Shown piece by piece: positions 963 to 64,000 of a stretch of 64,000 nt of DNA. The notes under the pieces are model-generated. The model was not told the DNA's origin, did not search any database, and worked only from the letters and a program-made list of their open reading frames with translations. The stretch is from the sequence record PQ471515.1; one strand, 5' to 3'. The first letter of the stretch is position 1; each line of letters opens with the position of its first letter. The position numbers were made by a program, and so were the translations under genes.

Positions 963-1246
963 TGGAATTTATTGTTGCACCTGATGAACTAAAAACATTC
1001 ACGTTCCGAGACAATAACAATTATCCTTATACAAATCATTCATTGAATTCATTGCATGTTATATCAATCATTGCATCTGAATACAGAGACAATCCATGTA
1101 TTGATTTTAAAACCACTGATGGTGAATATACATGGGTAGTTCCGAACGATAAATACAGTTATCAGGGTGCAGTGGAGATCCGCGACTCGATTCTAAAGCA
1201 AATCGAAGATGGACATACTCATCCTAAACTAAACATTCAGTACTGA
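962..1246 (+). CDS. Hypothetical protein
   Basis: TAATG stop/start coupling. Confidence 0.65.
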   Translation: MEFIVAPDELKTFTFRDNNNYPYTNHSLNSLHVISIIASEYRDNPCIDFKTTDGEYTWVVPNDKYSYQGAVEIRDSILKQIEDGHTHPKLNIQY

Positions 1247-1406
1247 AATCGTTTAACCGGATAGCTTCTAGTCGGTACTGAATTCCTCCTTTTGTCTAGA
1301 AGCTATCACTCTTTTAAAGTATAATGATATCACCCTCATGGTTCATTATATTCATTACCCTCTAACAGTATCTTTTTTATTCCTCTTTGATACTGTATTT
1401 TAGAAG

Positions 1407-1436
1407 TTGACATTTTTACTTCTACTGTGTTATACT
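1407..1436 (+). promoter_or_regulatory. sigma70-type early promoter
   Basis: TTGACA-18-TATACT with TGn extended -10. Confidence 0.7.
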
Positions 1437-1486
1437 TAAGGCTGATTCATTATGAATCGGCCTTTTTTCTTGTGGGGATTAATGTA

Positions 1487-1903
1487 ATGAATAAAGAAGT
1501 TATTAGTTTAATTGATGAGTATATCAACCAAACATATCGTTTGATATTTTTAAATGAATTTGAGTCCAGAACAACGTATTATTCTGGTGAATATGAGATA
1601 ATGACTGGATCATTTCTTAACGGATACATGGAGTTTTTAGAACAAAGCGATAATGTTTTCATTTCCATATCTGAAAAACATGGTGATGATTATGTTATTG
1701 ATGTATGGCCTAATAAAGTAGAGATTGACACTACAAAGAAAATTGTAATTGATGTGGATGAATCGTTGTATGATTTAACTGAAGATATGTACATGCAACT
1801 AAATTTCGTTTACGATCTAACTAACATAAGTTATTCTAATCTAAGTAAATTATTTTATATTTCTGGTGTACTACATAATAACGTACAACAAAATAAAGGA
1901 TAA
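1487..1903 (+). CDS. Hypothetical protein, EE-FQ family
   Basis: LTEDMYMQLNFVYDL motif; start moved to ATG 1487 because the ORF-track start lies inside the promoter. Confidence 0.65.
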   Translation: MNKEVISLIDEYINQTYRLIFLNEFESRTTYYSGEYEIMTGSFLNGYMEFLEQSDNVFISISEKHGDDYVIDVWPNKVEIDTTKKIVIDVDESLYDLTEDMYMQLNFVYDLTNISYSNLSKLFYISGVLHNNVQQNKG

Positions 1904-1911
1904 ACATTTAA

Positions 1912-2316
1912 ATGTTGAAAATTCCACCACATACACTATCTATGCTAATTGAAAATGGTGTAATATTTTCTGAAGGGTGTAGTTCATTCTATACATGTGA
2001 CGTGGACCCGTACACATTTGAATACCGTTCATTTAAAAATACATTGAGTGTTCCATGTGAAGCTTCTGACAACATTGTACTTGTCGTTTCGTTCTATGGT
2101 GTACCAAACTTCTTCATTGATATATATTATGATTCTTTTAAGATACAAACATACGATCATTTTCTTGGTGAAGTGCTCTTGCAAATGCAGATTGAACATG
2201 TTACTATAGATGAAGATATGTTCTTTCAGCTATCTACTGTATACGATATGTGTGGGTTGACAGTTGACAACATTAATGGTATCTTTGAAATTGCCAGAAC
2301 CCTACGAGGAAGATGA
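1912..2316 (+). CDS. Hypothetical protein, EE-FQ family
   Basis: IDEDMFFQLSTVYDM motif; tandem paralog of upstream ORF. Confidence 0.7.
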   Translation: MLKIPPHTLSMLIENGVIFSEGCSSFYTCDVDPYTFEYRSFKNTLSVPCEASDNIVLVVSFYGVPNFFIDIYYDSFKIQTYDHFLGEVLLQMQIEHVTIDEDMFFQLSTVYDMCGLTVDNINGIFEIARTLRGR

Positions 2317-2317
2317 T

Positions 2318-2734
2318 ATGGTCAAAATTTTAAGTGACAATGCGGTTGATATTGTCATTGATGTACTTGAAAACAGTAATACATTTGAGAAGAAACACAG
2401 TACTGTATACTTCGGTGAAGATTGTTGGCTAAGTTATACATCTAATAATTCGTTTATAATTCGTGTTGAAAAGGGTGATGTTGGATTAACGATACATGCC
2501 TCCTATACTAAAACTGACAAACAAATAACTGTCATCGCTAACAAGCCAAGTACATCCGATTTCTGGGATAGTATTGATGATTGTGAACACTACACGTCAA
2601 CATTCTATGATACAGAAGAAGAACATTTCATGGATAGTACTGTTAAAGAATTATCTGTTCCATTTAAACTTATGAAAGCAGCAAGAGATTTTATTTTAAA
2701 ATACAAAAAAACAGGAGTTTATGATGCAATTTAA
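2318..2734 (+). CDS. Hypothetical protein, EE-FQ family (divergent)
   Basis: GAGGA SD at 2306-2310; TEEEHFMDSTV motif. Confidence 0.6.
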   Translation: MVKILSDNAVDIVIDVLENSNTFEKKHSTVYFGEDCWLSYTSNNSFIIRVEKGDVGLTIHASYTKTDKQITVIANKPSTSDFWDSIDDCEHYTSTFYDTEEEHFMDSTVKELSVPFKLMKAARDFILKYKKTGVYDAI

Positions 2735-3170
2735 TGGTAAGGTTTCTAAAGTAGGTTTAGTTTTTGAAAATTGTGAGTTCATTGAGATTGATGTAAAGAA
2801 TGTTTTATGGATGCATATTGCTGACGAGAAAACTCTGTGTAGTCGTTTTTCCAACGGTCTAACTATTAGTACTGGTATTGGTGAGTTCGGTATTGCATTA
2901 CGTAGTGACACACCATCTGATTTCATGGATAACTCAACACTGTTAGAACGTTTAAAAATGCGTGATGTTACACACGTTTATCTATATGATACTAACGGTG
3001 TTGAACAGCGTTATGTAGTTGAATGGGCTAATTATAACCTTAGTGATCAGTATTCAGTAAACCAGCGTGTACAACTCACCCCTGGTGGTAATATTGTGTT
3101 TGTTAGTTCAACTGGTAAATTAATCAGTGTAGATGATGCAAATATTGATTTATTCACTTCATATAACTAA
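2721..3170 (+). CDS. Hypothetical protein
   Basis: 149 aa ORF in co-directional run. Confidence 0.65.
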   Translation: MMQFNGKVSKVGLVFENCEFIEIDVKNVLWMHIADEKTLCSRFSNGLTISTGIGEFGIALRSDTPSDFMDNSTLLERLKMRDVTHVYLYDTNGVEQRYVVEWANYNLSDQYSVNQRVQLTPGGNIVFVSSTGKLISVDDANIDLFTSYN

Positions 3171-20775: not shown

Positions 20776-21216
20776 ATGTACGTATATCGTTTTGAACTTA
20801 AATTCAGTTATATTGAACCTAACTTAGATCCAGCAAAAACAGTAGGTCCGTTCGCACGGTACTCTTCACGATACAGTACTAAAAATGGATTTGACCGTTT
20901 GTGCATGACCACGCCTTCGCAATTCCAACCAGAACCAACTGAAGATGGAATCTATTCAATCAAACGTGGCTGGGCATTTGGCTGTCAGAGTTTGAATGAT
21001 TTGTTTAAGTTCTTTACTATGGACTTGGGTAAATTACATCGTGCAGGGTTTGCTGTATCAGTATATGAAGTTCCTGATAGTCATGTTGACATTGGTCGTA
21101 GTCAGGTTCAGTACTATTGTGGTAGTGCCAATCTGGTTCGTATCATGTCAGTGAAAGAAGCAAAGGATGAGTATCGCCAAAGTAAAAGAGTAATACATGA
21201 GGCTGTATATGGATAA
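20776..21216 (+). CDS. Phage hypothetical protein
   Basis: 146 aa; first gene after cassette. Confidence 0.65.
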   Translation: MYVYRFELKFSYIEPNLDPAKTVGPFARYSSRYSTKNGFDRLCMTTPSQFQPEPTEDGIYSIKRGWAFGCQSLNDLFKFFTMDLGKLHRAGFAVSVYEVPDSHVDIGRSQVQYYCGSANLVRIMSVKEAKDEYRQSKRVIHEAVYG

Positions 21217-22414: not shown

Positions 22415-22484
22415 TCTAGATCAATTTTTCAGATATTCTCTGTAAATAATAGCAGTACAGAACATTATTTTACGGAGGTGTAAT

Positions 22485-22721
22485 ATGGAAACTATAATCA
22501 TCATATGTGCGTTGTTTGCATTTTTGGTAATGTGGTCACCAACATTCATTGCATATAAAATGAAAAATAAAAATGCAGAAGCAATTATGTACGTAAACTT
22601 ATGTTGCATACTAACTTATGGAATACTTTTATTCTTTACTGAATTTACATTAATCCCAGTAGTAGTTTGTTCATCAATGTTTATTTGGTTGTTTCTGCTT
22701 TATGAATCTATTAAAAAATAA
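22485..22721 (+). CDS. Imm-like (superinfection immunity) membrane protein
   Basis: WSPTFIAYKMKNKNAEAIMYVNL pattern; GGAGG SD. Confidence 0.55.
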   Translation: METIIIICALFAFLVMWSPTFIAYKMKNKNAEAIMYVNLCCILTYGILLFFTEFTLIPVVVCSSMFIWLFLLYESIKK

Positions 22722-22729
22722 AAGATATA

Positions 22730-22759
22730 GGGTTGGTAATATGCCATCCCTTTTACTTT
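22730..22759 (+). terminator. Putative intrinsic terminator
   Basis: GGGTTGG-loop-CCATCCC-TTTTACTTT. Confidence 0.55.
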
Positions 22760-22775
22760 ATGTGGGGTTTAATTA

Positions 22776-23348
22776 ATGAATAGAAAAGGTAAGTTCAAAG
22801 TATCAAAGAAGAACAAAAGTTCTAGATTTAGACCTATAACTTTAACTTTTAAGGCTAAAGAAGAATTAACTGCACTTAGTAAAAAGATAATTTCATCTAA
22901 GATTAAAGTATCATACGTAAATTCGGTAAAATTTCAGAAGGTTAAACCACAAGACAAACTCATTTCACTTATATTTAAACGTAATGATTTTGAGATATTA
23001 GTAGATGATTATAGAGCCTATAATGCTGGATTCATTCATGTCACTTGTAATACCGAACTAACTGAGTTGGAACATTTGACATGTATCATAAGTGTAGATA
23101 ACGGTGTGGTGAAGTACAATTTTTTACATTTTACCAATATCAATAATGGAATGGGTGTACAATCCAGACCTATAGTACCTACATGTGATGTGACTAATTT
23201 AGCAAAGCTCAATGAAGAAGAATATTTTCAAGAAAGCATTGTAACTGAGCATTTAGATGCTATAATAGCAACTTACAAAGAATGCATATGGGTTTTGAAT
23301 GCGATAAAGCCCAAATTGTGTTTAATGAATGTCGTTCGTGATTTATAA
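22776..23348 (+). CDS. Hypothetical protein, EE-FQ family with basic N-terminus
   Basis: NEEEYFQESIV motif; K/R-rich first 50 aa. Confidence 0.65.
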   Translation: MNRKGKFKVSKKNKSSRFRPITLTFKAKEELTALSKKIISSKIKVSYVNSVKFQKVKPQDKLISLIFKRNDFEILVDDYRAYNAGFIHVTCNTELTELEHLTCIISVDNGVVKYNFLHFTNINNGMGVQSRPIVPTCDVTNLAKLNEEEYFQESIVTEHLDAIIATYKECIWVLNAIKPKLCLMNVVRDL

Positions 23349-23361
23349 CTGGAGATGTAGT

Positions 23362-23805
23362 ATGGGTTGGATTAACGTTAATAGCATTGAACTAAATGAG
23401 CAAGACATATTTGCCTTTGTTAATTTGGTAGAGAACATTGCTATTAAAGGTCGTCTGTTTAGTTCATCGGACGGTAAAAAATGGATCTCTCTTATGAACG
23501 ACAATGGCGAGATTTATGACGTTATGCAACTACCTCATTGGGCTTATAAGAATACATCTGATGATGTGATGGCTGCTGTTATGCGTGAGTTTGAGAAGCT
23601 GCCAGGTGGTGATATTAAGAACATCGTATTCAATGCAGAACGCATGAACTACACACCAGAGCAGCTTCAACAGTTGGCAATTGCTGCCTATCAAGCTGCC
23701 ATTAAGAAACCTGAATGTGTGATATTAAAGTACACACCGAACTTGAAGTTAACACTAGAAGATATGGATTCCTTTATCTTCAGTTCAGAACTTAAACAGT
23801 ACTGA
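23362..23805 (+). CDS. Hypothetical protein
   Basis: GGAG SD at 23351; start moved to ATG 23362. Confidence 0.6.
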   Translation: MGWINVNSIELNEQDIFAFVNLVENIAIKGRLFSSSDGKKWISLMNDNGEIYDVMQLPHWAYKNTSDDVMAAVMREFEKLPGGDIKNIVFNAERMNYTPEQLQQLAIAAYQAAIKKPECVILKYTPNLKLTLEDMDSFIFSSELKQY

Positions 23806-23876
23806 TTTGACTTTGGAACAACCATTTCATATGTGATATAATCTTAAGTGTCTGTTGAAATAAACAGCACATGAAG

Positions 23877-23884
23877 TATAAATA
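23877..23884 (+). promoter_or_regulatory. T4-late-type TATAAATA box
   Basis: Exact TATAAATA 32 bp upstream of the 23917 start. Confidence 0.45.
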
Positions 23885-23916
23885 TTAAAGTAATTTATCT
23901 CTTTAAGGAGTATGAA

Positions 23917-24300
23917 ATGGTTGATAAATGGAATAAGAAAGATCCATCGCATGATGTGGATATTTCTGGAATTGATAATGCACATAAGCATAAGTATCTT
24001 GATTCACTAGGTCTACTAAAGCCTGACCAAAGTCTTGCACATGATCGTCCTTCACGCGAAAAAGCTTTCAGTTTAGAATCACTAGGCCATGAATTGAATC
24101 GTGTATTTGAAGATCATCCAATTTATGTACGTGATATCATTGAGAAACTTAAAGTGACTCCTAAAGAGCACTTCAAGGCAACAGTACACGCAGCATTCCG
24201 TGCACTACATGAAGCACTAAAGAAAACTCATAACCTTCGTAAGATTCATGATGATATCGTGAACTCTATTGAAGGCGAAAAACATAAGTTTAAAAAATAA
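23917..24300 (+). CDS. Hypothetical His/Lys-rich protein, possible late/virion-internal
   Basis: AAGGAG SD; shares DKW and YxxSLGLL motifs with 25172 ORF. Confidence 0.6.
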   Translation: MVDKWNKKDPSHDVDISGIDNAHKHKYLDSLGLLKPDQSLAHDRPSREKAFSLESLGHELNRVFEDHPIYVRDIIEKLKVTPKEHFKATVHAAFRALHEALKKTHNLRKIHDDIVNSIEGEKHKFKK

Positions 24301-24303
24301 TTA

Positions 24304-24340
24304 AAAGGGGTTGACTTCAGTCAGCCCTTTGTCGTATAAT
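24304..24340 (+). promoter_or_regulatory. Terminator/promoter repeat cassette
   Basis: GGGTTGAC-TTCA-GTCAGCCC-TTT; TTGACT-18-TATAAT. Confidence 0.8.
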
Positions 24341-24387
24341 ATTTTCATCAAGTGATACAAAATACAAACAACGTGAGGTATTAAATT

Positions 24388-24501
24388 ATGCAAGGTACTA
24401 AATTCATCATCGCTGCCCTAATCGCTGCTGTTGTAGTGGGTACAGTATGTTATTCAATTGACACCTATATCAATACACCTAGTGTTGAACAAACCAAATA
24501 A
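24388..24501 (+). CDS. 37 aa single-TM peptide (not in ORF track)
   Basis: GAGG SD; MQGTKFIIAALIAAVVVGTVC. Confidence 0.5.
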   Translation: MQGTKFIIAALIAAVVVGTVCYSIDTYINTPSVEQTK

Positions 24502-24509
24502 GGGATATC

Positions 24510-24773
24510 ATGGCTGAAACATTATCACTATATGCGTTAGTACTGTTATTTGTCGGATTTCTTCCCGCACTCATTACAGCCATTCGTGTTGTTAAACATG
24601 AAGCTGCATTGATTGTATGTAGTATTGGGTCGAACATTCTATTGTATTTCTTTTTGACAAACACTATTGTACTGTTCGCTTTCTTTATCATGATTCTGTG
24701 GGTACTTGTAATTCTCGGATTCTTCATTTGGTCATTGGTTGATCCTAAGAAAAAAACAGGAGAAGTGAAATGA
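24510..24773 (+). CDS. Imm-like (superinfection immunity) membrane protein
   Basis: FLPALITAIRVVKHEAALI...IWSLV pattern. Confidence 0.45.
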   Translation: MAETLSLYALVLLFVGFLPALITAIRVVKHEAALIVCSIGSNILLYFFLTNTIVLFAFFIMILWVLVILGFFIWSLVDPKKKTGEVK

Positions 24774-25066
24774 AATTAATTATTGTAATGATGATGTTTT
24801 TGGCTTTCCCAGTACTGGCTACTCCTAATCTGGACTGCACACTGTTGCGTTCAGATGGTGACACACTTGAAATCAACACATATGAACTCTTTGGTCCAAG
24901 TGTAGTGGAGAATGAAACCACCTACAATTTCAAAGCTATTGACTTTGAAGGTAATGTTCCAGTACTAACTACAATGACTATTGACAAAACTACTTTACTC
25001 GGACGAATCACCACACAACGCGGAGAAAGTAAAACATTCACAGCGAAAGCTGACTGTAACTACTAA
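24770..25066 (+). CDS. Putative exported protein
   Basis: Signal peptide ending VLA-TP, then NLDC. Confidence 0.6.
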   Translation: MKLIIVMMMFLAFPVLATPNLDCTLLRSDGDTLEINTYELFGPSVVENETTYNFKAIDFEGNVPVLTTMTIDKTTLLGRITTQRGESKTFTAKADCNY

Positions 25067-25086
25067 TGGTATAGTACAGTGAAAAT

Positions 25087-25126
25087 AGGGTTGACTTCGG
25101 TCAACCTTTTCTTTATACTATAAATA
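25087..25126 (+). promoter_or_regulatory. Terminator/promoter cassette with overlapping TATAAATA
   Basis: GGTTGAC-TTCG-GTCAACC-T4; TTGACT-17-TATACT; TATAAATA at 25119-25126. Confidence 0.75.
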
Positions 25127-25171
25127 TAGTCATAGAGAATAAACAATATGAAATCTATGGAGAGAAATCAA

Positions 25172-26659
25172 ATGCCAGGTCAATTTACTGATAAAAATGG
25201 CGGGAACATGGCAGGTCACTCTGATAAATGGAGTGAACGCAATCGTCGTCAAAATAGCTACCAAGCAGGACAGGGGTCACGTGGTTCACGTAATCAAGGG
25301 ACAGGTTTAGCTGGTAAGGCAAACGCAGAAGCAGGTGAAGTTAAGAGTACTGAGAACATGACTGAACTAGAAAAGCTACGTTATGTTAACTCATTGGGTC
25401 TTCTTAACGCAACACAGAAACAACGCCTTGCTGATATGGAACGTGCTGAAAAAGAACAAGCAGTTCCTAAAGAAGAACCAAAACCAGAAGCTCCTAAAGC
25501 AGCTAACCCTGTTAAAGAGTTATCTGATAACTTAGGTAAGATCTTTGCTAACAAACCACAGTTGATTCAGGGTATTGTCAAAGCACTACAGGCAGTTCCT
25601 AAAGAAGAACTCAAAGGTAAAGCACAAGCTGTACTTGATGCAATGAAAGGTAATAAGAGCACTGAACCTACTGAAGTATTCAGTACTATCATGCGTGCAC
25701 TTGAAGGTACACACAAAGAAGATTCCAAAGAACCTGAACAGGGTGAAGCAAGTCTTGATGGTATTCTTAAAACTTTTGATAATATTGGTAAAGCAGACCG
25801 TGCTAATGCCCAGCAAGTCAAGAATGTACTGGCTAAACTTGAAAACCGTTTAGAAGGTAAAGACGATAAGGTTAAGCTCGTATCAGATGCAGTTAACAGT
25901 GCACTTAAATCTTATGTACAAGGTGAGAAAAGTCGCTTCGTAACAGCTATGGATGCTGCATTCAACACTATGAAAAAGTATGAAGCAGAACATGGTGAGA
26001 AAGTGACACCTGATGGATATCTACTACGTAAAGATGAAGAAGGTGCAGTTGAACAGAAAGATGTTGAGCCTGAGCAAGAAGATCTACCTGATACCGTTGA
26101 TATGGATGGATACATTCATCGTCCTGAGATGGAAGAGTTTGGGTCAGATAAAGAAGGTTTTGAACATGCAATGGAAGTATATAAAGCATTAGTTAAAAAT
26201 CCAGATTATGCTAACCGTTTTGTTGACGAGTTTGATAGTGCATGGAATAACTATAAAGACAAAGGTTATGACTTCCCTGCTGAAGCTGCATTCTTTGAAC
26301 TTGGTAAACTATTAGCTAAACATGGAATTGACGTTGGTTCATCTGATTCTGATGGTATGGAAGAAGAACATCTTGAAATGACTGATAAATCAATTCATGA
26401 ACTTCAAAAGTTAATGATGTGGATATCCGAGATTGGTAAAAAAGCAGGTGCTGATAGTAAAAGTATCAACAAAAATATTAGTTGGATTAAAGATAATGTT
26501 GGTAACAATGCTCGTAAACTTCAAAAGGCTTGGGCTGATTTAGTAAATGGTGCAGATGATGTTGACATTGAATCACCAGAAGCATATGAGTATGCACTAA
26601 CTACACTTGATAACTCATTCAAAGAGTACGACCGTGGTGTTGGAAAGGATAAAAAATAA
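25172..26659 (+). CDS. Large charged helical protein, possible virion-internal
   Basis: About 495 aa E/K/A/D-rich; GGAG SD at 25159 favours ATG 25172 over the track start 25148. Confidence 0.6.
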   Translation: MPGQFTDKNGGNMAGHSDKWSERNRRQNSYQAGQGSRGSRNQGTGLAGKANAEAGEVKSTENMTELEKLRYVNSLGLLNATQKQRLADMERAEKEQAVPKEEPKPEAPKAANPVKELSDNLGKIFANKPQLIQGIVKALQAVPKEELKGKAQAVLDAMKGNKSTEPTEVFSTIMRALEGTHKEDSKEPEQGEASLDGILKTFDNIGKADRANAQQVKNVLAKLENRLEGKDDKVKLVSDAVNSALKSYVQGEKSRFVTAMDAAFNTMKKYEAEHGEKVTPDGYLLRKDEEGAVEQKDVEPEQEDLPDTVDMDGYIHRPEMEEFGSDKEGFEHAMEVYKALVKNPDYANRFVDEFDSAWNNYKDKGYDFPAEAAFFELGKLLAKHGIDVGSSDSDGMEEEHLEMTDKSIHELQKLMMWISEIGKKAGADSKSINKNISWIKDNVGNNARKLQKAWADLVNGADDVDIESPEAYEYALTTLDNSFKEYDRGVGKDKK

Positions 26660-26666
26660 ACATTTA

Positions 26667-26701
26667 AAAGGTTGACTTCGGTCAACCTTTTTTTGTAAAT
26701 A
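26667..26701 (+). terminator. cUUCGg terminator cassette followed by TAAATA
   Basis: AAAAGGTTGAC-TTCG-GTCAACCTTTT; no sigma70 -10, but TTTTG-TAAATA as in the array promoters. Confidence 0.8.
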
Positions 26702-26730
26702 TTGTAGAGGGTTTTATAAGAGGTAATGCA

Positions 26731-27343
26731 ATGTTTAAATATGTTTTATTTTCACTTGTATTGTTTACTGATATAGTTTATAGTACTGAATACCAGTGCT
26801 CCATTGCTAGACAGGAGTTTAGAAACGGTGAGTTCTATACCAAGTCTTACACTAGAGGATTGGTACATGACAATAATAAAACTATAGGGTTCAATGCATT
26901 TGATAACAAAGATCGATATACGTCTGGAATACTATCTGAACGTAAGTCGGATATACTAGGTATCGAGCGTGAATTCCGGTGACACGGTTGCAATGTGTAA
27001 TGATATTGAGAGTACTAAGAAAGTATATACTAATGGTGAAAATACTTTTAGATTCCACAATCTTACTACCAATGAAAGTTTATACTTCTACAACTGTAAA
27101 GAGTTCATTAAACCTGTGGATAACTCATGTGATATGCCGGAGCCAAAAACTGCTGTATGTGAGGAACCACAATCTAAAGCTGACAAAGATTCAAAAGATA
27201 AGAAAGACAAAGCTGACAAATCGGATAAAAAAGAAAACAAAAAGAAAGCTAAAGATGATAAAGATAAAAAGTCCCCTAAGCCAAATCCATTTGAAAAGCC
27301 AAAGAATGAAAAGCCAAAACCAGACATGACATGTAAAATATAA
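26731..27343 (+). pseudogene. Exported protein apparently split by a +1 frameshift near 26960-26982
   Basis: Signal-peptide ORF 26731-26982 plus overlapping ORF 26969-27343 together resemble the layout of 27410-27823. Confidence 0.4.
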
Positions 27344-27346
27344 AAG

Positions 27347-27383
27347 AAAAGGGTTGACTTCGGTCGGCCCTTTTTGCTATAAT
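27347..27383 (+). promoter_or_regulatory. Terminator/promoter repeat cassette
   Basis: GGGTTGAC-TTCG-GTCGGCCC-T5; TTGACT-18-TATAAT. Confidence 0.85.
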
Positions 27384-27409
27384 CATTTTATCAACTACTG
27401 GAGGCAAAC

Positions 27410-27823
27410 ATGTTAAAAGTTATTTTCCGTTCTATCAGTTCATTACTTCTTATGATTAGTTCAGTTTGTTATGCAAATGAAGTATCTGATTTATTTGAGA
27501 AGAATTACCCAACTGCACAAGAGATGGGTGTTTTAAAATGCAAGCTAACTTCGTACAACATCATCGGCAGTAAACTTGTACTGGAACATGAACGTAGTAC
27601 ACCAATCCCTCTAGTAGAAGAAGGTAGTACCTTTAGCTTCAAGTACGGGGTGAACGTAACATCTGGTGTAATGAACAATGTTGATGCAGAGACTGGTTCA
27701 ACATGGAGTACTAGTGGCAAAGATGTGTTTCATCGTATGCGTGAAAATGGTAAACTAAAGTACGTATATGAAAGTTCATTCATGAAACGTGTATTCATTA
27801 TAAAAAATTGTGTACCAGCATAA
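27410..27823 (+). CDS. Putative exported protein
   Basis: GGAGG SD; signal peptide ending CYA-NE; two Cys. Confidence 0.65.
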   Translation: MLKVIFRSISSLLLMISSVCYANEVSDLFEKNYPTAQEMGVLKCKLTSYNIIGSKLVLEHERSTPIPLVEEGSTFSFKYGVNVTSGVMNNVDAETGSTWSTSGKDVFHRMRENGKLKYVYESSFMKRVFIIKNCVPA

Positions 27824-27834
27824 GGAACAACATC

Positions 27835-28110
27835 ATGCGTTCATTTGAAAACTTAATCGGTAAACTTCGCTTACAAGAAATTGAAGCTGATGTGAAGGAA
27901 TTATCTGAAACTAAGAGTTACATTCATTTAGATGAACTGTTTATTAAGTACGGTGAGATTGGTTTTAAGTCATTATTTGTTTTTGTCATGAAGGTGCATA
28001 GTTTAAAGTACTTTGATTTGAGTTCAAAAGACGGACAACCAAATCTGTATTACATGTATTATCTTAAGAACATAGACGAAGCTAATACATTATTCTTAGA
28101 ATATATGTAG
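27835..28110 (+). CDS. Hypothetical protein
   Basis: AAGGA SD; start moved to ATG 27835. Confidence 0.55.
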   Translation: MRSFENLIGKLRLQEIEADVKELSETKSYIHLDELFIKYGEIGFKSLFVFVMKVHSLKYFDLSSKDGQPNLYYMYYLKNIDEANTLFLEYM

Positions 28111-28119
28111 GGGTAAAAA

Positions 28120-28458
28120 ATGGAACAACATTTTGAATTAATTAATAAGGTATCATTTTATGTAGTATCGTTAATTTGGGTGTATTACATGTTTGGTTAC
28201 ATTATTGCATTCTTCCGATACACGACCTTGTATCAACGCATATACTACGATGCACCAATTTCATTTTTGATGTTCTGTGCATGTACGTGGGGGATAATTG
28301 AAGCACTGGTATGTGGATATAGTACGGACGAATTAAATCTCGTATCGGTGTTGACATTACTAACAATTGCTACTATGATAGCTACAGTTCCGATATTTTT
28401 GCTCTTTAAACTGCTTCATCGCATCGATGAGTGGCGTAATAAAATCCCTGAAAAGTAA
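28120..28458 (+). CDS. 3-TM membrane protein family member
   Basis: TM1-FFRY, C-terminal RNKIPEK. Confidence 0.65.
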   Translation: MEQHFELINKVSFYVVSLIWVYYMFGYIIAFFRYTTLYQRIYYDAPISFLMFCACTWGIIEALVCGYSTDELNLVSVLTLLTIATMIATVPIFLLFKLLHRIDEWRNKIPEK

Positions 28459-28467
28459 GGATTGATA

Positions 28468-28809
28468 ATGATTTTTTACACTAATGCGTTTGCTTATGCC
28501 GTTGCATCAATCTACATTGTGTACTTCTTATTTGGTGGAGTACTGTACTTCTTTAAGTACAAAACATTGTTTAACCGAATGTATCCAAATCATCCAATTG
28601 TAGTAGTACTTTTGATGATTTCTGTTGCTCACATCATTGTAGAAACAATAATGGGTATCAGTGCAGTACATTACAGTCTAGGTACTATTGTAATTATTAC
28701 TATGATCATCGCATACATTTTAGTAATGGGTTCTGGTTTATTTGGGAATGTAGCAATGAAAATGTATAATCGAATCAAAACATTACGTGATAATCTACCG
28801 GAGCGTTGA
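28468..28809 (+). CDS. 3-TM membrane protein family member
   Basis: TM1-YFFKY, C-terminal LRDNLPER. Confidence 0.65.
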   Translation: MIFYTNAFAYAVASIYIVYFLFGGVLYFFKYKTLFNRMYPNHPIVVVLLMISVAHIIVETIMGISAVHYSLGTIVIITMIIAYILVMGSGLFGNVAMKMYNRIKTLRDNLPER

Positions 28810-28810
28810 G

Positions 28811-29155
28811 ATGTATAATTTAAATTTAATATCATATATCATAACAACACTGTTTACTTTCTATGCCTTTGTTGGTATACTCCTACTGTACTTTAAATTT
28901 TATAAACTCTTTGACCGTTTTTATCCGTCATTAGAACATGAATTCTTATTAGTGATGTACATCTGTCTAACGTTTATGTCTACATTTTTCACTGCATCTG
29001 ATGGTATCATTGGTATTAAAGCTGAAGAACCAAATGGGAGTACGCTTGTTGCCTTTATTCTGGTAGGATTTTTCAGTACTTATATTACCTTTATTTCAGG
29101 ATGTACCGTGATTGATTATCTTGTGAAATTACGAGATAAAATGCCAAATCGATAG
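28811..29155 (+). CDS. 3-TM membrane protein family member
   Basis: TM1-YFKF, C-terminal LRDKMPNR. Confidence 0.65.
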   Translation: MYNLNLISYIITTLFTFYAFVGILLLYFKFYKLFDRFYPSLEHEFLLVMYICLTFMSTFFTASDGIIGIKAEEPNGSTLVAFILVGFFSTYITFISGCTVIDYLVKLRDKMPNR

Positions 29156-29164
29156 GGGATTGCT

Positions 29165-29422
29165 ATGTTTGCATTGCGTAATAAAAACACAAAAGAGATT
29201 CTATGTATCTCAACAGTATGGGATTGTGCAGGAAGTGAAATGATTCTCGAAGAAGGTTCAGGTGATTGTGTTTATGTTGTTCAGGATCGTCGCGAACTGG
29301 AATCATTACTTGACGAATTTAATGCTGGTGGAAATCCTAAAAGTACTCAATTCCCTGAGATCAGGAATCCAGCACCACCAGGCTCTTATGAAATTCTACA
29401 ACTGTGGGAGATGGATAAGTAA
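29165..29422 (+). CDS. Hypothetical protein, paralog of 31285-31554
   Basis: MFALRNK...YVVQD...PE...YEI pattern. Confidence 0.6.
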   Translation: MFALRNKNTKEILCISTVWDCAGSEMILEEGSGDCVYVVQDRRELESLLDEFNAGGNPKSTQFPEIRNPAPPGSYEILQLWEMDK

Positions 29423-29802
29423 TGCGACAAATGCACAAAGTAACCGAGCTAAACAAGCGTCTGATTAAACAATCAATGTTTGAGGATAAAGAGTCTTACT
29501 ATAACTTCAAACGTGCTGTAGAGGCTGCTATCCACATTCAGAAGCTTAAAGATAGTGGATGTATTATTCTCGAAAATGGTTCTGACGTTGTTACTGATGA
29601 CTTCAGTGTAGCGTTTGATGTTTCACCTGATGGTTCGCTATCAATGCCACGCTTAGGGACTGGTGACATGACTGTGTGGGTAGGTTTCACTATGGGGAAT
29701 GTACCGGGCACGGTGTATGTAGATGATGCTGAGTTGAAAGAAAGCTTCAAAAACTTATCGCATCTTGAACCACAATACGCACATGAAATGAATTTATTTT
29801 GA
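29422..29802 (+). CDS. Hypothetical protein
   Basis: TAATG coupling. Confidence 0.6.
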   Translation: MRQMHKVTELNKRLIKQSMFEDKESYYNFKRAVEAAIHIQKLKDSGCIILENGSDVVTDDFSVAFDVSPDGSLSMPRLGTGDMTVWVGFTMGNVPGTVYVDDAELKESFKNLSHLEPQYAHEMNLF

Positions 29803-59043: not shown

Positions 59044-60192
59044 TCATTGTATAAATGACATATCTACTTCTGTATAATTAAGAACGTTCTGTCCAGAAAT
59101 ACCACCCATTACTACTATTGCAAGGCCACAATAATATAATTTTCCAGTATCCGTAAGTATAAGTGATCCAGATGGACTGCGTACCAAATCACACGAACTA
59201 TTAAAAGAAGTATAAGAAGGAGTATAGGAGTACTGATTATTATTATTACCAACACCTAATTGCCCAAACCCATTCGTTCCAGAAGCATATAGAACTTCAT
59301 CTGCTTTGACAATATGTGATGCCATGTTACCAACACAAGTATATAGAGTATAAACTCCTGAACTCAATAATGTCGGAGTTTTATATTGTATATCTGTAGA
59401 TGTAGAAGTACCACCTGTACCAAATTCGTTCCCATATTGTGCACCGAACTGTTTACCACAAGCGTACAAATTATTATCCGATTTGATAAAAAATGTACTC
59501 TGATAACTTACATTAAAATCTATAACATCCGAAGAAATCATCGTCACCCCAGTAATAGAAGTTTGATTACCCGTGCCCAACTGATAGTAATAGTTAAAAC
59601 CACAACCCCATAAAGTATTATCTTCTTTTAGGTATATGTTACCAACTGCCTTTTTAACCGAAGTTATAGTATCTATCCTTTTGAATGTGTTAAAAGAATT
59701 AATGTTTGTACCATCACCAAATGATGATAGGTTCGAGTTATTGTTCGCTCCACAACAATACAATGTACCATCGTTTGTTATCAAATTTACCTTCATATCA
59801 TAAAAACTACTCATGTACTTTATATCAGAAACATTAATACCACCTGATGTTATCCACGTGGTACAGTCCGTCCACAAAGTTTTTCTATCAGTTACACCAG
59901 TGAATGCCTTCGTGTTACCAGTGATAAAAACTTTTCCAGTACCTTTCTCTTCATACAATTGACAATCACTACTGTTATCTTCCAATAGAACTCGTTTAAC
60001 ATTCTCCGCACAAAGAATAAATTTACTCGATGCTACACCTGTACCAGTACCCCAATTCGTCGCAGAAGATGCATACAACTTATCAGTATAAGTATCATGA
60101 AGATACATAGAATCACTGGAATATATTTTAAAACGCCCTTCTTTCTCAGGTATAATATTCCCATAATCAAACATTCTAACAAAAGGTAACAT
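59044..60192 (-). CDS. MLPF-tag protein 1, RCC1-like
   Basis: MLPFVRMFDYGN at 60192 with GGAGG SD; LWGCGFNYYYQLGTG, YASGTNGFGQLGVG. Confidence 0.8.
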   Translation of the reverse strand: MLPFVRMFDYGNIIPEKEGRFKIYSSDSMYLHDTYTDKLYASSATNWGTGTGVASSKFILCAENVKRVLLEDNSSDCQLYEEKGTGKVFITGNTKAFTGVTDRKTLWTDCTTWITSGGINVSDIKYMSSFYDMKVNLITNDGTLYCCGANNNSNLSSFGDGTNINSFNTFKRIDTITSVKKAVGNIYLKEDNTLWGCGFNYYYQLGTGNQTSITGVTMISSDVIDFNVSYQSTFFIKSDNNLYACGKQFGAQYGNEFGTGGTSTSTDIQYKTPTLLSSGVYTLYTCVGNMASHIVKADEVLYASGTNGFGQLGVGNNNNQYSYTPSYTSFNSSCDLVRSPSGSLILTDTGKLYYCGLAIVVMGGISGQNVLNYTEVDMSFIQ

Positions 60193-60208
60193 ATTCCCTC
60201 CTTTATTC

Positions 60209-60223
60209 ATTATATCATATTTA
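60209..60223 (-). promoter_or_regulatory. Putative late promoter motif at head of array
   Basis: TAAATA-TGA-TATAAT. Confidence 0.65.
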
Positions 60224-60240
60224 CCCCAAAAAGAAAACCC

Positions 60241-60269
60241 TTGACAACCTTCCAGTACTGTTGTACAAT
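60241..60269 (+). promoter_or_regulatory. sigma70-type promoter for micro-gene array
   Basis: TTGACA-17-TACAAT with CAGTACTG in the spacer; divergent from array promoter. Confidence 0.75.
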
Positions 60270-60294
60270 AGAAGGAATATAAGGAGAACTACAC

Positions 60295-60522
60295 ATGACA
60301 AATACTCTTAAGTACTACCTCAATACTCTAAATGAACTAGAGTACGCGAAGTTTCTCGCGGATAGTTCGTGGCTAATTGAGCTAAAAACACATAACAGTA
60401 CTGGATGTAACCTTATGCTGAACAATGCACTTGATACCCTTGTAGTGAGCATTTTACACAACAACATCTGCGGGGATAGAAACAAACAATTATCAAAAAT
60501 CTTAGTACTGGTAGCTCTATGA
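60295..60522 (+). CDS. Micro-gene array member (divergent)
   Basis: AAGGAG SD; MTNTLKYYL...ILVLVAL. Confidence 0.6.
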   Translation: MTNTLKYYLNTLNELEYAKFLADSSWLIELKTHNSTGCNLMLNNALDTLVVSILHNNICGDRNKQLSKILVLVAL

Positions 60523-60731
60523 ACACTATGAACATTGAACAGTACTACATTGATGCACTACCAACAAAAGGTCTACGAGAAAGCCTACTGTATACACAAA
60601 ATAATTATATAAACCTCAAACATTGTCCTAAACTCTTGAACTCGTACAGGAATAATAAAATAAGAAATGCTGTACAAGGGGTAGAAAGTATGCAATACTA
60701 TTACATCCTAACCCTTTTAATCGAGCACTAA
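60519..60731 (+). CDS. Micro-gene array member
   Basis: MNTMNIEQYYIDALP...YYILTLLIEH. Confidence 0.65.
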   Translation: MNTMNIEQYYIDALPTKGLRESLLYTQNNYINLKHCPKLLNSYRNNKIRNAVQGVESMQYYYILTLLIEH

Positions 60732-60732
60732 T

Positions 60733-60918
60733 ATGTATAAAGAATTCTACTGTAGTAAGCTGCACAAACAATACAGAGATTCATTTCCCAATGAACCTAT
60801 GGATATGAATAGTCCCTTTTATAAATTTGACTTCAGACTGGAGACACGTTATGCAATAGAACATCAATTTCCTGAAACTAAGTACTTATCTATCATGAAC
60901 CTCATCTTTAAGTTCTAA
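60733..60918 (+). CDS. Micro-gene array member
   Basis: MYKEFY...YLSIMNLIFKF. Confidence 0.65.
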   Translation: MYKEFYCSKLHKQYRDSFPNEPMDMNSPFYKFDFRLETRYAIEHQFPETKYLSIMNLIFKF

Positions 60919-60929
60919 AAGAGTACTAT

Positions 60930-61142
60930 ATGAAAACAATGAACATACACCAGTACTACTTAGATATTCTCCCTAAAGATGTACAGTTCATCCTTAAACA
61001 AGAATACAGTACTTTAAAAAACCTTAAAAGAACCGCACCGAATGCATTAATCCTGCACCAAAAAAATGTAGTTGATAATATTCTACAAGGTGTACCAGGG
61101 ACCGAGTACTTTAACATAATAAGGCTAATTACATTACCATGA
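60930..61142 (+). CDS. Micro-gene array member
   Basis: MKTMNIHQYYLDILP...YFNIIRLITLP. Confidence 0.65.
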   Translation: MKTMNIHQYYLDILPKDVQFILKQEYSTLKNLKRTAPNALILHQKNVVDNILQGVPGTEYFNIIRLITLP

Positions 61143-61324
61143 ATCATATATTATACTATTACCAAAATCTATCCGACAGGGACAAGTACACCCACAACTC
61201 CAATGTATGGTACTACAAACGCGGTAGTATAAGAGACAAACAACATTACTTCTGTATTGCTATAAAAGAAGCACTAACAACTAAGTACACGTACAGAGCA
61301 GTACTGAAACTTATTGATATGTAA
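61139..61324 (+). CDS. Micro-gene array member
   Basis: C-terminal KYTYRAVLKLIDM. Confidence 0.65.
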   Translation: MNHILYYYQNLSDRDKYTHNSNVWYYKRGSIRDKQHYFCIAIKEALTTKYTYRAVLKLIDM

Positions 61325-61334
61325 AGAGAATACT

Positions 61335-61517
61335 ATGAGCATTGAATTGTACTTAAGTAAATTACAGCCTGGCGATAGATTCATCTACAATCAGTTCTGT
61401 ATCAACTACAAGAACGGGAGCAACAAATATCGTCGAGGATACCTATATACAAGCACAAGAGATGCACAAAACGAAAAGTACACATACAGAGAAGTACTTA
61501 AACTAATCTCTATTTGA
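61335..61517 (+). CDS. Micro-gene array member
   Basis: C-terminal AQNEKYTYREVLKLISI; start moved to ATG 61335. Confidence 0.65.
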   Translation: MSIELYLSKLQPGDRFIYNQFCINYKNGSNKYRRGYLYTSTRDAQNEKYTYREVLKLISI

Positions 61518-61525
61518 GGTAATAT

Positions 61526-61711
61526 ATGAATACATTTGAGTACTATACAAATAAACTATCTATGCCTGAAAGATCTCATCTCTATGTGTGGAGAAATGCG
61601 TATAAAAGCGGCAATAAACTTATACAAAGAAATTCCCTTACAGTGTGTACAAATTTAATTAAAGCAGAGTACCGCACATATATTGAAGTACTGAAACTGA
61701 TAGCAATCTAA
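61526..61711 (+). CDS. Micro-gene array member
   Basis: MNTFEYY...YIEVLKLIAI. Confidence 0.65.
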   Translation: MNTFEYYTNKLSMPERSHLYVWRNAYKSGNKLIQRNSLTVCTNLIKAEYRTYIEVLKLIAI

Positions 61712-61719
61712 GGTACTCT

Positions 61720-61899
61720 ATGCAAGAATTCTATATCTATAAACTCCAGCACAAAGATAGATACAACTATAATAAATTCCAAAGGTACTACACAGTCGGG
61801 AACAAAAGAGATAAAAAACGTTATCTACTCTCGTGTACAGTAGAAGCACAAAACGAAAAGTACACGTACAGAGAAGTACTTAAACTAATCTCAATCTAA
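61720..61899 (+). CDS. Micro-gene array member (59 aa, not in ORF track)
   Basis: MQEFYIYKL...AQNEKYTYREVLKLISI. Confidence 0.65.
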   Translation: MQEFYIYKLQHKDRYNYNKFQRYYTVGNKRDKKRYLLSCTVEAQNEKYTYREVLKLISI

Positions 61900-61906
61900 G
61901 GTAGAC

Positions 61907-62095
61907 ATGAACACTTTTGAGTACTACTTCAATAAACTAAACCACATAGAACAAAGTATGCACCACACATTTATTCAGAACCATCAATCATCTTCACCTC
62001 TAATTAAAAACATATCGATTGAGATTATAACTAACAATGTACTGTCATCTGAACGTTATATGTATATTGATGTACTGAAACTCATCTCTATGTAA
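61907..62095 (+). CDS. Micro-gene array member
   Basis: MNTFEYY...YIDVLKLISM. Confidence 0.65.
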   Translation: MNTFEYYFNKLNHIEQSMHHTFIQNHQSSSPLIKNISIEIITNNVLSSERYMYIDVLKLISM

Positions 62096-62103
62096 GGAAT
62101 AAT

Positions 62104-62283
62104 ATGCAAGAATACTATATAGAACACATAAGCATTAAAGACCGTTTCATGTACGACACCTTCGTGAAGTACTACAACTTGGCAACTAACAGTACTAAAA
62201 ATATTAATCTCAATAGCTGCATTCATCACGCACTAACAAAAGATAATCCCTTCAGGGAAATCCTCGCACTAGCATCTGTATAA
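62104..62283 (+). CDS. Micro-gene array member (59 aa, not in ORF track)
   Basis: AAGGA SD; MQEYYIEHI...FREILALASV. Confidence 0.6.
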   Translation: MQEYYIEHISIKDRFMYDTFVKYYNLATNSTKNINLNSCIHHALTKDNPFREILALASV

Positions 62284-62294
62284 AGGAAAACCAA

Positions 62295-62954
62295 ATGAAA
62301 CTTAATGCACACAGCAAACAATACCTTAAGCACTTTAAGTACCTCAACAGTATTCAAGCAGAATCTATTACATCTGCATATACGTATCACCCAAATGTAC
62401 TAAAGAAACGAAATAAAAAGAAAAAATCCAGAAATGTTCTCGTATCTAAGAACCTCAAATCGTACTTGAAGAAAAATAATATAGCTCTTGCTTTTATTAA
62501 TATCTATAATACTGATTTAAAAGTATTGAGTACTAATACCAGCACAAAAGCACTAAAGAATGCATCTATCTATATACACATGGATAATATCCCGTGCACT
62601 ATAATTCTATCTTTCGGGAATGTATACTTCTTCGGGAATTGTAATAGCACCCATGATATCAGTACTGCACAATTCCAAATCGGAGATATGTACTGCATGG
62701 GTTCAGAAAAAATACACGATAACATGCACTTCTTCCAAAAGCAACGTACTAACGAAACTGATACAGTACTGCAATTCCTCAAAGAACTAGAACACAAAGA
62801 ATTATCCGACGAAGAAGAATTCATGTACAGTACTGTAATCGATAATCCAGGACTCTATAAAAACGCGTACAAACTAACAAAACATGTACAGGAACTTATC
62901 AGTACTGATAAGAAATTTCATCACCTCATTACGTATATTACAAACTATGTATAA
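62295..62954 (+). CDS. Hypothetical protein, EE-FQ family with basic N-terminus
   Basis: SDEEEFMYSTVIDN motif; AAGGA SD. Confidence 0.65.
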   Translation: MKLNAHSKQYLKHFKYLNSIQAESITSAYTYHPNVLKKRNKKKKSRNVLVSKNLKSYLKKNNIALAFINIYNTDLKVLSTNTSTKALKNASIYIHMDNIPCTIILSFGNVYFFGNCNSTHDISTAQFQIGDMYCMGSEKIHDNMHFFQKQRTNETDTVLQFLKELEHKELSDEEEFMYSTVIDNPGLYKNAYKLTKHVQELISTDKKFHHLITYITNYV

Positions 62955-63132
62955 AGAATACTACATAGATAAACTCCCAATGCATCTACAATACCTTGTA
63001 CCAACAGAACCATTGGGTATAGAAAAAGACTACGAAAAAGACTACTTCGTTAAGTGCACTAAATCCTCGATAGATATTGACGACTATAATCGAGTACTGT
63101 ATCACATCATTTTACTAATATATAAGTACTAA
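62947..63132 (+). CDS. Micro-gene array member
   Basis: MYKEYYIDKLP...LYHIILLIYKY; start moved to ATG 62947. Confidence 0.65.
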   Translation: MYKEYYIDKLPMHLQYLVPTEPLGIEKDYEKDYFVKCTKSSIDIDDYNRVLYHIILLIYKY

Positions 63133-63133
63133 T

Positions 63134-63313
63134 ATGCACAAACATAAAGAATTCTACTTGTCGTACCTTAATTCCGATATAGTAACATCCAATACCTTCA
63201 GTACTAAAATTATCTATAATGAATTAATGAAAGAATGTATTAAAGGTGCTATTAACCCTAAAGATACGTATGACTTGTACTATGCAGTACTAACCCTTGT
63301 TTTCACGAAATAA
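63134..63313 (+). CDS. Micro-gene array member (59 aa, not in ORF track)
   Basis: MHKHKEFYL...LYYAVLTLVFTK. Confidence 0.6.
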   Translation: MHKHKEFYLSYLNSDIVTSNTFSTKIIYNELMKECIKGAINPKDTYDLYYAVLTLVFTK

Positions 63314-63321
63314 CACATAAT

Positions 63322-63510
63322 ATGAATAACCACAAAGAATACTACATAGATAAACTCCCAATGTATCTACAGAGCCATATACCAAACGTTGCATTGGGAA
63401 TAAAAGATGACGCAAAAACAATGTTCCAAGAATGTACTAAGTACACCCTAATGTTCGAGGATAGAACATATAAACTGTACTACATCCTCGCCCTAATATT
63501 CAAGTACTAA
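63322..63510 (+). CDS. Micro-gene array member
   Basis: MNNHKEYYIDKLP...LYYILALIFKY. Confidence 0.65.
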   Translation: MNNHKEYYIDKLPMYLQSHIPNVALGIKDDAKTMFQECTKYTLMFEDRTYKLYYILALIFKY

Positions 63511-63520
63511 AGAGAACAAT

Positions 63521-63703
63521 ATGCATAAAGAATACTACACACAATTTCTCCCCAGTATATTTGAACACTACGCCAGATATAAAGTCCCCCTGGATAACGA
63601 TTTGGCAGTACTGGGATTCAATAACTGCATAGAACGAAGTATAGAAAATAGTAGTAGTTATGACCAGCTATATAACACTATCCTACTTATATTCAGGTAC
63701 TAA
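63521..63703 (+). CDS. Micro-gene array member
   Basis: MHKEYY...LYNTILLIFRY. Confidence 0.65.
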   Translation: MHKEYYTQFLPSIFEHYARYKVPLDNDLAVLGFNNCIERSIENSSSYDQLYNTILLIFRY

Positions 63704-63704
63704 T

Positions 63705-63896
63705 GTGTATAAAGAATACTACATAAAAGATTTACCACCGCACCTTCAAGGTAATCTGTTAGAAGATGAACCTCGCGGTATCAATGCACAAAACGATAAA
63801 GTGTACTTTACTATGTGCACTAAAGCATGTATACTAGATTTTGATAGCTACCATCGAGTACTGTATCATGTACTGTACCTAGCTTTCGTGTACTAA
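63705..63896 (+). CDS. Micro-gene array member
   Basis: GTG start; (M)YKEYYIKDLP...LYHVLYLAFVY. Confidence 0.6.
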   Translation: MYKEYYIKDLPPHLQGNLLEDEPRGINAQNDKVYFTMCTKACILDFDSYHRVLYHVLYLAFVY

Positions 63897-63905
63897 GAGA
63901 ACAAT

Positions 63906-64000
63906 ATGCATAAAGAATTCTACTTAAGCCATCTGGAACTAAACTCCCAAATGCTTATACCACTAAAACCAATAGATATCAAGGATAAGAAAAATACCAA
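63906..64000 (+). CDS. Micro-gene array member, truncated by window end
   Basis: MHKEFYLSHL. Confidence 0.55.
   Translation, partial: MHKEFYLSHLELNSQMLIPLKPIDIKDKKNT

Follow-up and report, generated by a model that had tools for sequence, protein, structure and literature searches.

Near the end of the genome record of Escherichia phage Turkey3 (PQ471515.1; 361,208 bp, circular; genus Asteriusvirus) lies an array of very small, tightly packed genes, each of which is annotated as a "hypothetical protein." We analyzed the last 64 kb of this record (64,000 nucleotides, which we call the window; a record coordinate minus 297,208 gives the window coordinate). About 30 jumbo phages of E. coli and Salmonella (the 121Q/PBECO4 group, Asteriusvirus) are 85-96% identical to the window region. 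We found that the array encodes a family of small proteins that is restricted to the genus Asteriusvirus and whose orthologs are under purifying selection, and we tentatively propose that these proteins are made early in infection and bind other macromolecules.

On the + strand, positions 60295-63896 hold 15 complete open reading frames (ORFs) of 59-75 amino acids (aa). A 16th small ORF starts at 63906, is interrupted by the end of the window, and continues to record position 91; across the junction of the circular record there are five further members, and the array ends at record position 1091. In total, 21 small genes and one gene of 219 aa (which we call X) lie within 4,797 bp, 98% of which is coding. 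An earlier reading of the window (the original prediction) had claimed at least 15 related micro-proteins of 59-75 aa, with short members at 61720, 62104, and 63134, in an array that runs past the window; the three short members are indeed present (59 aa each), and the full array exceeds the claimed number.

The features are given below in window coordinates unless marked as record positions. Letters A to D denote the four subfamilies that we distinguish, counts of phages refer to the phages that were compared, E-values are for PHROG profiles, and dN/dS is the ratio of nonsynonymous (dN) to synonymous (dS) divergence.

60241..60269, + strand: sigma70-type promoter, TTGACA-17-TACAAT, with CAGTACTG in the spacer and AGTACT at 60254-60259
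60281..60286, + strand: Shine-Dalgarno sequence AAGGAG of the first gene, invariant in 7 phages
60295..60522, + strand: m01, 75 aa, subfamily D, probably the most distant relative; ortholog in 7 of 8 phages
60519..60731, + strand: m02, 70 aa, subfamily C; start overlaps the m01 stop (ATGA)
60733..60918, + strand: m03, 61 aa, subfamily B; phrog_11711, E = 2e-15
60930..61142, + strand: m04, 70 aa, subfamily C; variable presence, 4 of 8 phages
61139..61324, + strand: m05, 61 aa, subfamily A; start overlaps the previous stop; dN/dS 0.21 against phage 121Q
61335..61517, + strand: m06, 60 aa, subfamily A; annotated coding sequence
61526..61711, + strand: m07, 61 aa, subfamily A; variable presence, 3 of 8 phages
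61720..61899, + strand: m08, 59 aa, subfamily A
61907..62095, + strand: m09, 62 aa, subfamily A; variable presence, 3 of 8 phages
62104..62283, + strand: m10, 59 aa, subfamily A
62295..62954, + strand: X, 219 aa, not detectably a family member; phrog_29152, E = 3e-116
62947..63132, + strand: m12, 61 aa, subfamily B, the member that was modeled; 8-nt overlap with the end of X; phrog_11711, E = 8e-27
63134..63313, + strand: m13, 59 aa, subfamily B
63322..63510, + strand: m14, 62 aa, subfamily B; phrog_11711, E = 2e-20
63521..63703, + strand: m15, 60 aa, subfamily B; phrog_11711, E = 2e-24; the 121Q ortholog is 100% identical in amino acids, with dS 0.125
63705..63896, + strand: m16, 63 aa, subfamily B; GTG start, as annotated
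63906..64000 and on to record position 91, + strand: m17, subfamily B; cut by the window end
record positions 93-1091, + strand: five further subfamily B members (up to m22)

The arrangement is that of a single operon. The promoter is the best match to the sigma70 consensus in the region (11 of 12 positions); its -35 box is invariant across 7 phages, as is the Shine-Dalgarno sequence of the first gene, and the palindrome in its spacer is present in 6 of the 7. Behind it, the intergenic gaps range from -8 to +13 nucleotides (nt), with a median of 8, and 8 of the starts are translationally coupled to the preceding stop (a gap of 1 nt or less). Matches to the Shine-Dalgarno sequence of at least 4 nt precede 11 of the 22 true starts, as compared to 5 of the 82 other ATGs in the array, and a scan of the array sequence found no terminator-like site inside it. 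This agrees with the original prediction of one strong sigma70 promoter ahead of tightly coupled ORFs. The array also has an unusual composition: its coding strand (positions 60001-64000 of the window) has more C than G (GC skew of -0.17) and many more A than T (AT skew of +0.2), while the remaining genes of the window have more G than C on the coding strand, which is the opposite. The skew of the array probably reflects a protein composition rich in Tyr, Asn, Lys, Leu, and Thr, together with the choice of TAC, CTN, and ACT codons.

The small proteins form four subfamilies: D (m01), C (m02 and m04), A (m05-m10), and B (m03 and m12-m22). Within Turkey3 the paralogs are quite diverged from each other (median identity 23%, maximum 50%), and the relationships across subfamilies were revealed by profile-profile comparison and not by HMMER, as single-profile HMMER searches across subfamilies gave 8-13 bits, no better than the top shuffled sequences. 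We compared subfamily alignments from 8 phages with hhalign, with one side reversed as a control. A matched B (P = 2.4e-6 over 54 columns) and B matched C (P = 2e-6 over 57 columns); the matches of A to C (P = 1.2e-3) and of C to D (P = 1.7e-3 over 62 columns) were full-length and co-linear. The reversed controls gave P of 0.0085 or above and at most 11 columns, and therefore the similarity among the subfamilies is not compositional, which was the result that the original prediction had said would count against it. These comparisons clearly relate A, B, and C to one another as a single family. Subfamily D, the first gene of the array, is probably a more distant relative, and its match is borderline.

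The original prediction also described the proteins as having fixed ends. This is true of two residues, Y6 and L57 (in the numbering of the gene at 62947), which are invariant across 78 aligned family sequences. The exact patterns that were proposed fit fewer members: 13 of the 21 for the N-terminus and just 5 of the 21 for the C-terminus (16 of the 21 if the C-terminal pattern is loosened).

Part of the family is represented in PHROG. The profile phrog_11711 (62 positions, with no assigned function) resembles the B members of the array from end to end, and the five B members that were tested match its positions 1-62 (E = 2e-15 to 8e-27). This profile covers one subfamily only and is not linked to a wider family or to an operon; the members of A, C, and D that were tested had no PHROG match at E ≤ 0.01. 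A description of the family was not found in the literature that we searched.

To see how a member might fold, we ran AlphaFold2 on m12 with the 78-sequence family alignment, which gave a confident model (predicted local distance difference test, pLDDT, of 89.9; predicted template-modeling score, pTM, of 0.75). The model has four helices (residues 3-7, 12-15, 28-43, and 47-60), as expected from the original prediction of small helical proteins. The low-entropy columns of the alignment are Y5, Y6, L10, and L17; 34, 37 (a cysteine), 38, 41, and 42; and 51, 54, 55, 57, and 58. These form hydrophobic stripes with helical spacing, one of them on helix 3; hydrophobic and aromatic residues dominate the last helix. 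In our reading, the conserved ends and the helix-3 stripe would form the core, and the remaining residues would be at the surface. The middle of the protein, which had been described as variable, is so only in part: it contains the conserved stripe on helix 3. A fold search of BFVD with the model returned only the family itself. Across the family, the isoelectric point (pI) ranges from 5.5 to 9.6, and tyrosine accounts for 10.7% of residues. We rejected the idea that these are membrane or secreted proteins: the highest hydropathy over 19 residues is 1.13, and there is no signal-like N-terminus.

In each of the 8 phages, X separates the A block from the B block. It is truncated to 137 aa in Salmonella phage SD-2_S15 and to 120 aa in SD-6_S16, no relatives were found outside of the Asteriusvirus lineage, and its AlphaFold model has low confidence (pLDDT of 35.7). 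We considered whether X might be a family member with an insertion, as there is a weak co-linear HMMER match at its C-terminus, and rejected this because hhalign against the family found nothing. We also rejected a relationship to ZBED RNase-like proteins: the Atlas feature scores (0.81-0.84) lie in a range that shuffled proteins often reach.

The family is restricted to the genus Asteriusvirus. A six-frame profile search of the entire Turkey3 record found members in the array only. Searching 1.84 billion protein representatives exhaustively with a profile returned 22 proteins, all of them small and from the Asteriusvirus lineage, except for one short and spurious stretch in a long protein. 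A Salmonella Asteriusvirus gave 14 family matches, and none were found in four related phages of other genera (RaK2, GAP32, CBB, and Erwinia phage Kaldavass).

Within the genus, 22 frames have stayed open, with their order preserved, in 8 phages whose DNA diverges by up to about 15%. All 8 share one order of blocks: D and C come first, followed by a few members of B or C, 2-6 of A, X, and then 7-11 of B. As for copy number, whose variation among isolates the original prediction had proposed checking, it does vary, from 14 to 21 across the 8 phages (the lowest count belongs to a contig that is incomplete). When the members are clustered at 55% identity, they fall into 25 ortholog groups, of which about 11 are near-universal and the others are variable; one ortholog type, which is number 19 in the Turkey3 array, is number 3 in some of the phages. 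In contigs from environmental RNA libraries, B paralogs are joined with 358-387 bp, or about two gene units, skipped or repeated (window positions 62984-63527). These joints suggest unequal recombination between paralogs, with gain and loss of units in wild relatives.

The retained orthologs are under purifying selection. Pooled dN/dS was 0.41-0.51 in four phage comparisons, and by region it was 0.28 for the N-terminus, 0.60 for the middle, and 0.48 for the C-terminus. The central segment, for which this check had been proposed, thus has the highest ratio of the three regions, and that ratio is below 1. Calling the array a diversified library, as the original prediction did, was an overstatement: the paralogs are old, as judged from their low identity, and each is conserved between phages. 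Among the retained orthologs there is no sign of an ongoing arms race; there is only gain and loss of members.

The array is also marked by a DNA word. AGTACT is the most over-represented hexamer of the window: it occurs 148 times in positions 1-60200, as compared to 19 expected (about 8-fold), and 111 times in the array and the next 12 kb, as compared to 6 expected (about 18-fold). It often occurs as CAGTACTG or TTCAGTACTGAAT and is present in the spacers of early promoters as well. The array was originally credited with the highest AGTACT density in the window. Indeed, the two 2-kb bins over the array contain 16 and 14 copies, and the other bins of the window contain at most 10. The next 2 kb, past the window, is denser still (20 copies). 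Inside the ORFs of the array there are 39 copies, as compared to 9.6 ± 2.6 if synonymous codons are permuted, and none of 1000 permutations reached 39. These copies fall in all three codon phases, including in the codons for the conserved (K/Q/E)-Y-Y and V-L motifs, and just 7 of the 21 Turkey3 members have AGTACT at the N-terminal motif. The excess of AGTACT is a genome-wide signal at the level of DNA and is not special to the family; the conserved end motifs double as carriers for it.

The array lies beside the long terminal repeat of these phages. The record for phage G17 holds both copies of the repeat, and gene offsets place it at 1-20668 (20,668 bp), which is the same length that PhageTerm gave for phage Sharanji (PMC11895373). 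In G17, the last array gene ends at 20934, or 266 bp beyond the repeat boundary. In Turkey3, the boundary maps to around record position 1395, so that the array ends about 300 bp outside of the repeat. A hairpin that resembles a terminator, GGCAGA-loop-TCTGCC with a run of T behind it, is conserved at the mapped boundary (record positions 1399-1415). This hairpin is likely to be the end of the array transcript, and it adjoins a physical end of the genome.

The inner edge of the repeat (record positions 1091-3062) is about 2 kb of ORF-poor DNA with around 19 AGTACT sites, many of them as the 14-bp perfect palindrome ATTCAGTACTGAAT; the ORF-poor DNA of the repeat is also rich in TTCAGTACTGAAT palindromes. 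A perfect promoter, TTGACA-16-TATAAT, at record positions 1759-1786 has no ORF behind it, and an Rfam search of the 12 kb after the array and a tRNA scan found nothing. Small genes follow further inside the repeat, and every one of them has a sigma70-type promoter to itself.

Beyond the other boundary of the repeat lies a second array (record positions 22460-29521), which begins about 100 bp from that boundary. Like the main array, it consists of coupled micro-protein paralogs on the same strand, about 30 of them, with lengths of 65-90 aa. It differs in sequence, with an LGTNYQE-like motif, and we rejected it as kin, as hhalign gave P of 0.075 or above against all four subfamilies. Because there are arrays at both boundaries, two unrelated micro-protein arrays bracket the terminal repeat.

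On the other side of the array promoter, and head to head with it, a long row of RCC1-like (β-propeller) genes occupies the - strand from 39890 to 60210 of the window. Two homologs of these neighboring RCC1-like proteins are present in the virion proteome of phage phAPEC6, which contains no array protein (PMC7247149).

When is the array expressed? In PA5oct, a distant member of this phage group, transcription depends on the host's RNA polymerase and the genes of the terminal repeat form the early class (PMC7318152). By this analogy, and from its conserved host-type promoter and its location beside the repeat, the array is probably expressed early, which favors the original prediction that it is expressed immediately on infection. 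Contigs from four environmental RNA libraries overlap the array, and two of these runs have almost no coverage of the neighboring late gene; because the runs were chosen by array sequence and the contigs show neither strand nor ends, this gives weak support.

What might these proteins do? The array may be compared to the early takeover modules of other phages. In SPO1 (gp37-gp60) and among the pre-early genes of T5, there are many lineage-specific proteins of under 100 aa with strong host-type promoters and a location in the terminal repeat. The array likewise encodes many lineage-specific proteins of under 100 aa behind a host-type promoter and beside a long terminal repeat. In contrast to the array, which is one operon of one paralog family outside of the repeat, the modules of SPO1 and T5 lie in the repeat, have many transcription units, and contain mostly unrelated genes.

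We tentatively favor the view, which we hold with somewhat less than even confidence, that the array is an early operon, transcribed by the host, for about 20 soluble mini-domain proteins that each bind a different macromolecule of the host or of a competitor. The host's sigma70 RNA polymerase would transcribe the operon once its DNA is in the cell, and translation would pass, coupled, from gene to gene. Y5, Y6, L10, L17, the helix-3 stripe, and positions 51, 54, 55, 57, and 58 on the last helix would pack into a small core, while the loop at 16-27 and the exposed faces of the helices would vary by paralog and so give each copy its own surface. In the cytoplasm, the products would then bind various macromolecules of the host or of competing phages stoichiometrically, for takeover or counter-defense. 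That they bind, and what they bind, we infer from their size, solubility, and diversification and from the analogy to early takeover modules.

Several of our results weigh against this proposal. First, sequence and structure searches found neither a known relative nor a fold match for the members. Nine small members and X had no match above the gathering threshold in Pfam-A, which includes curated anti-restriction and anti-CRISPR families (the best was 15.5 bits versus a threshold of 24), and the original prediction did not recognize the family either, for which the one PHROG match is to a profile without a function. A sequence search of the PDB with both alignments gave no matches, a search of the Atlas with m12 gave nothing usable, Foldseek with the m12 model found no match in the PDB at E ≤ 0.001, and the best VIA-align score (Z = 4.6) was to generic helical hairpins. 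Second, the array genes are outside of the terminal redundancy rather than inside it, as they would be in a module of the SPO1/T5 type. Depending on which end of the genome enters first, the array could even be the last DNA to enter the cell. Third, the proteins are not changing unusually quickly. Between Turkey3 and 121Q, dN for the array is 0.119, as compared to 0.108 for 50 other genes (from window positions 10000-34000), while dS is 0.233, or half of the 0.530 for the other genes, whose dN/dS is 0.20. The array has a higher dN/dS because its dS is halved, not because its proteins change faster. The halved dS suggests constraint on silent sites (from AGTACT, RNA structure, or coupling) or recent exchange or recombination, and it fits these better than it fits an arms race.

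A more specific version of the proposal, which we consider possible but doubtful, is that the array comprises about 20 copies of one helical scaffold that each neutralize a different defense or housekeeping protein of the host, and that both edges of the repeat are depots for counter-defense, with about 50 inhibitors between them. The twist in this version is that two constraints, one on the protein and one on AGTACT in the DNA, would be superimposed on the same codons of the end motifs.

Alternatively, the paralogs might assemble with each other. The conserved ends would then be an oligomerization interface, and the products would form a mixed homo- or hetero-oligomer, such as an early scaffold or cage. 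Co-transcription and translational coupling would favor matched amounts of the subunits, the last helix, with its invariant L57, has a strongly hydrophobic, aromatic character, and many copies are kept in the same order in all of the phages. However, the model of the monomer is already self-consistent, as judged by its pTM. Members are also gained and lost freely (14-21 copies), which would be unusual for one fixed assembly, and their charge varies, as seen from the range of pI. We consider co-assembly to be unlikely.

It seems rather less likely still that these are small regulators that bind nucleic acids, either as readers of AGTACT or as RNA chaperones for early small RNAs of the terminal repeat. 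Subfamily A is basic (pI of 9.4-9.6, net charge of +5 to +7), the array adjoins the densest region for AGTACT, and AGTACT is present in the spacer of its own promoter. Most of the B members are neutral or acidic, though, and one invariant word does not require 21 diverged paralogs to read it. Also, neither Foldseek nor VIA-align matched the model to a helix-turn-helix or another small DNA-binding fold (though folds may be alike even where a match is weak or missing).

Finally, the excess of AGTACT within the ORFs and a synonymous divergence of half the genome baseline both point to selection on the DNA itself. The ORFs could be incidental, with the stretch acting mainly as DNA or RNA (a landing pad dense in AGTACT, for example, or a structured leader next to the repeat) and the small proteins having no role themselves. 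This is very improbable because the frames are conserved across 8 phages, every pooled comparison gives a dN/dS below 1, true starts are enriched for Shine-Dalgarno matches, and the family alignment yields a confident fold; furthermore, Y6 and L57 are invariant even though only a third of members carry AGTACT at the N-terminal motif.

Which parts of this are new? Phages are already known to carry blocks of small early proteins next to a terminal repeat. The family itself is undescribed in the literature that we searched, is confined to one genus, and has no fold match; also new are the expansion of a single family within one operon and its pairing with a second array across the repeat. The nearest parallel for the expansion is in Bacillus phage G, which has a lineage-specific expansion of about 35 zinc-ribbon proteins that bind metal and are proposed to bind DNA (PMC7824862). 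As in the array, one tiny domain is greatly expanded in one jumbo phage, and its role has only been guessed at. The domain of phage G is a zinc ribbon, while the family in the array has a single conserved cysteine and a predicted helical fold.

Small early phage proteins are a major source of new inhibitors of bacterial defenses and of essential enzymes, and most of them are orphans that must be screened singly. The array instead offers one confidently predicted scaffold in about 25 natural variants, with the core and the surface separated, and these could serve as a panel for pull-downs, toxicity tests, and anti-defense screens. The family is also a compact model of how binding surfaces may diversify in a mini-domain. 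More broadly, the two paralog arrays at the inner boundaries of the repeat suggest that jumbo phages of this group may follow a general rule in laying out their early genes. Such a rule would aid annotation, as roughly 80% of the genes in these phages are still called "hypothetical."

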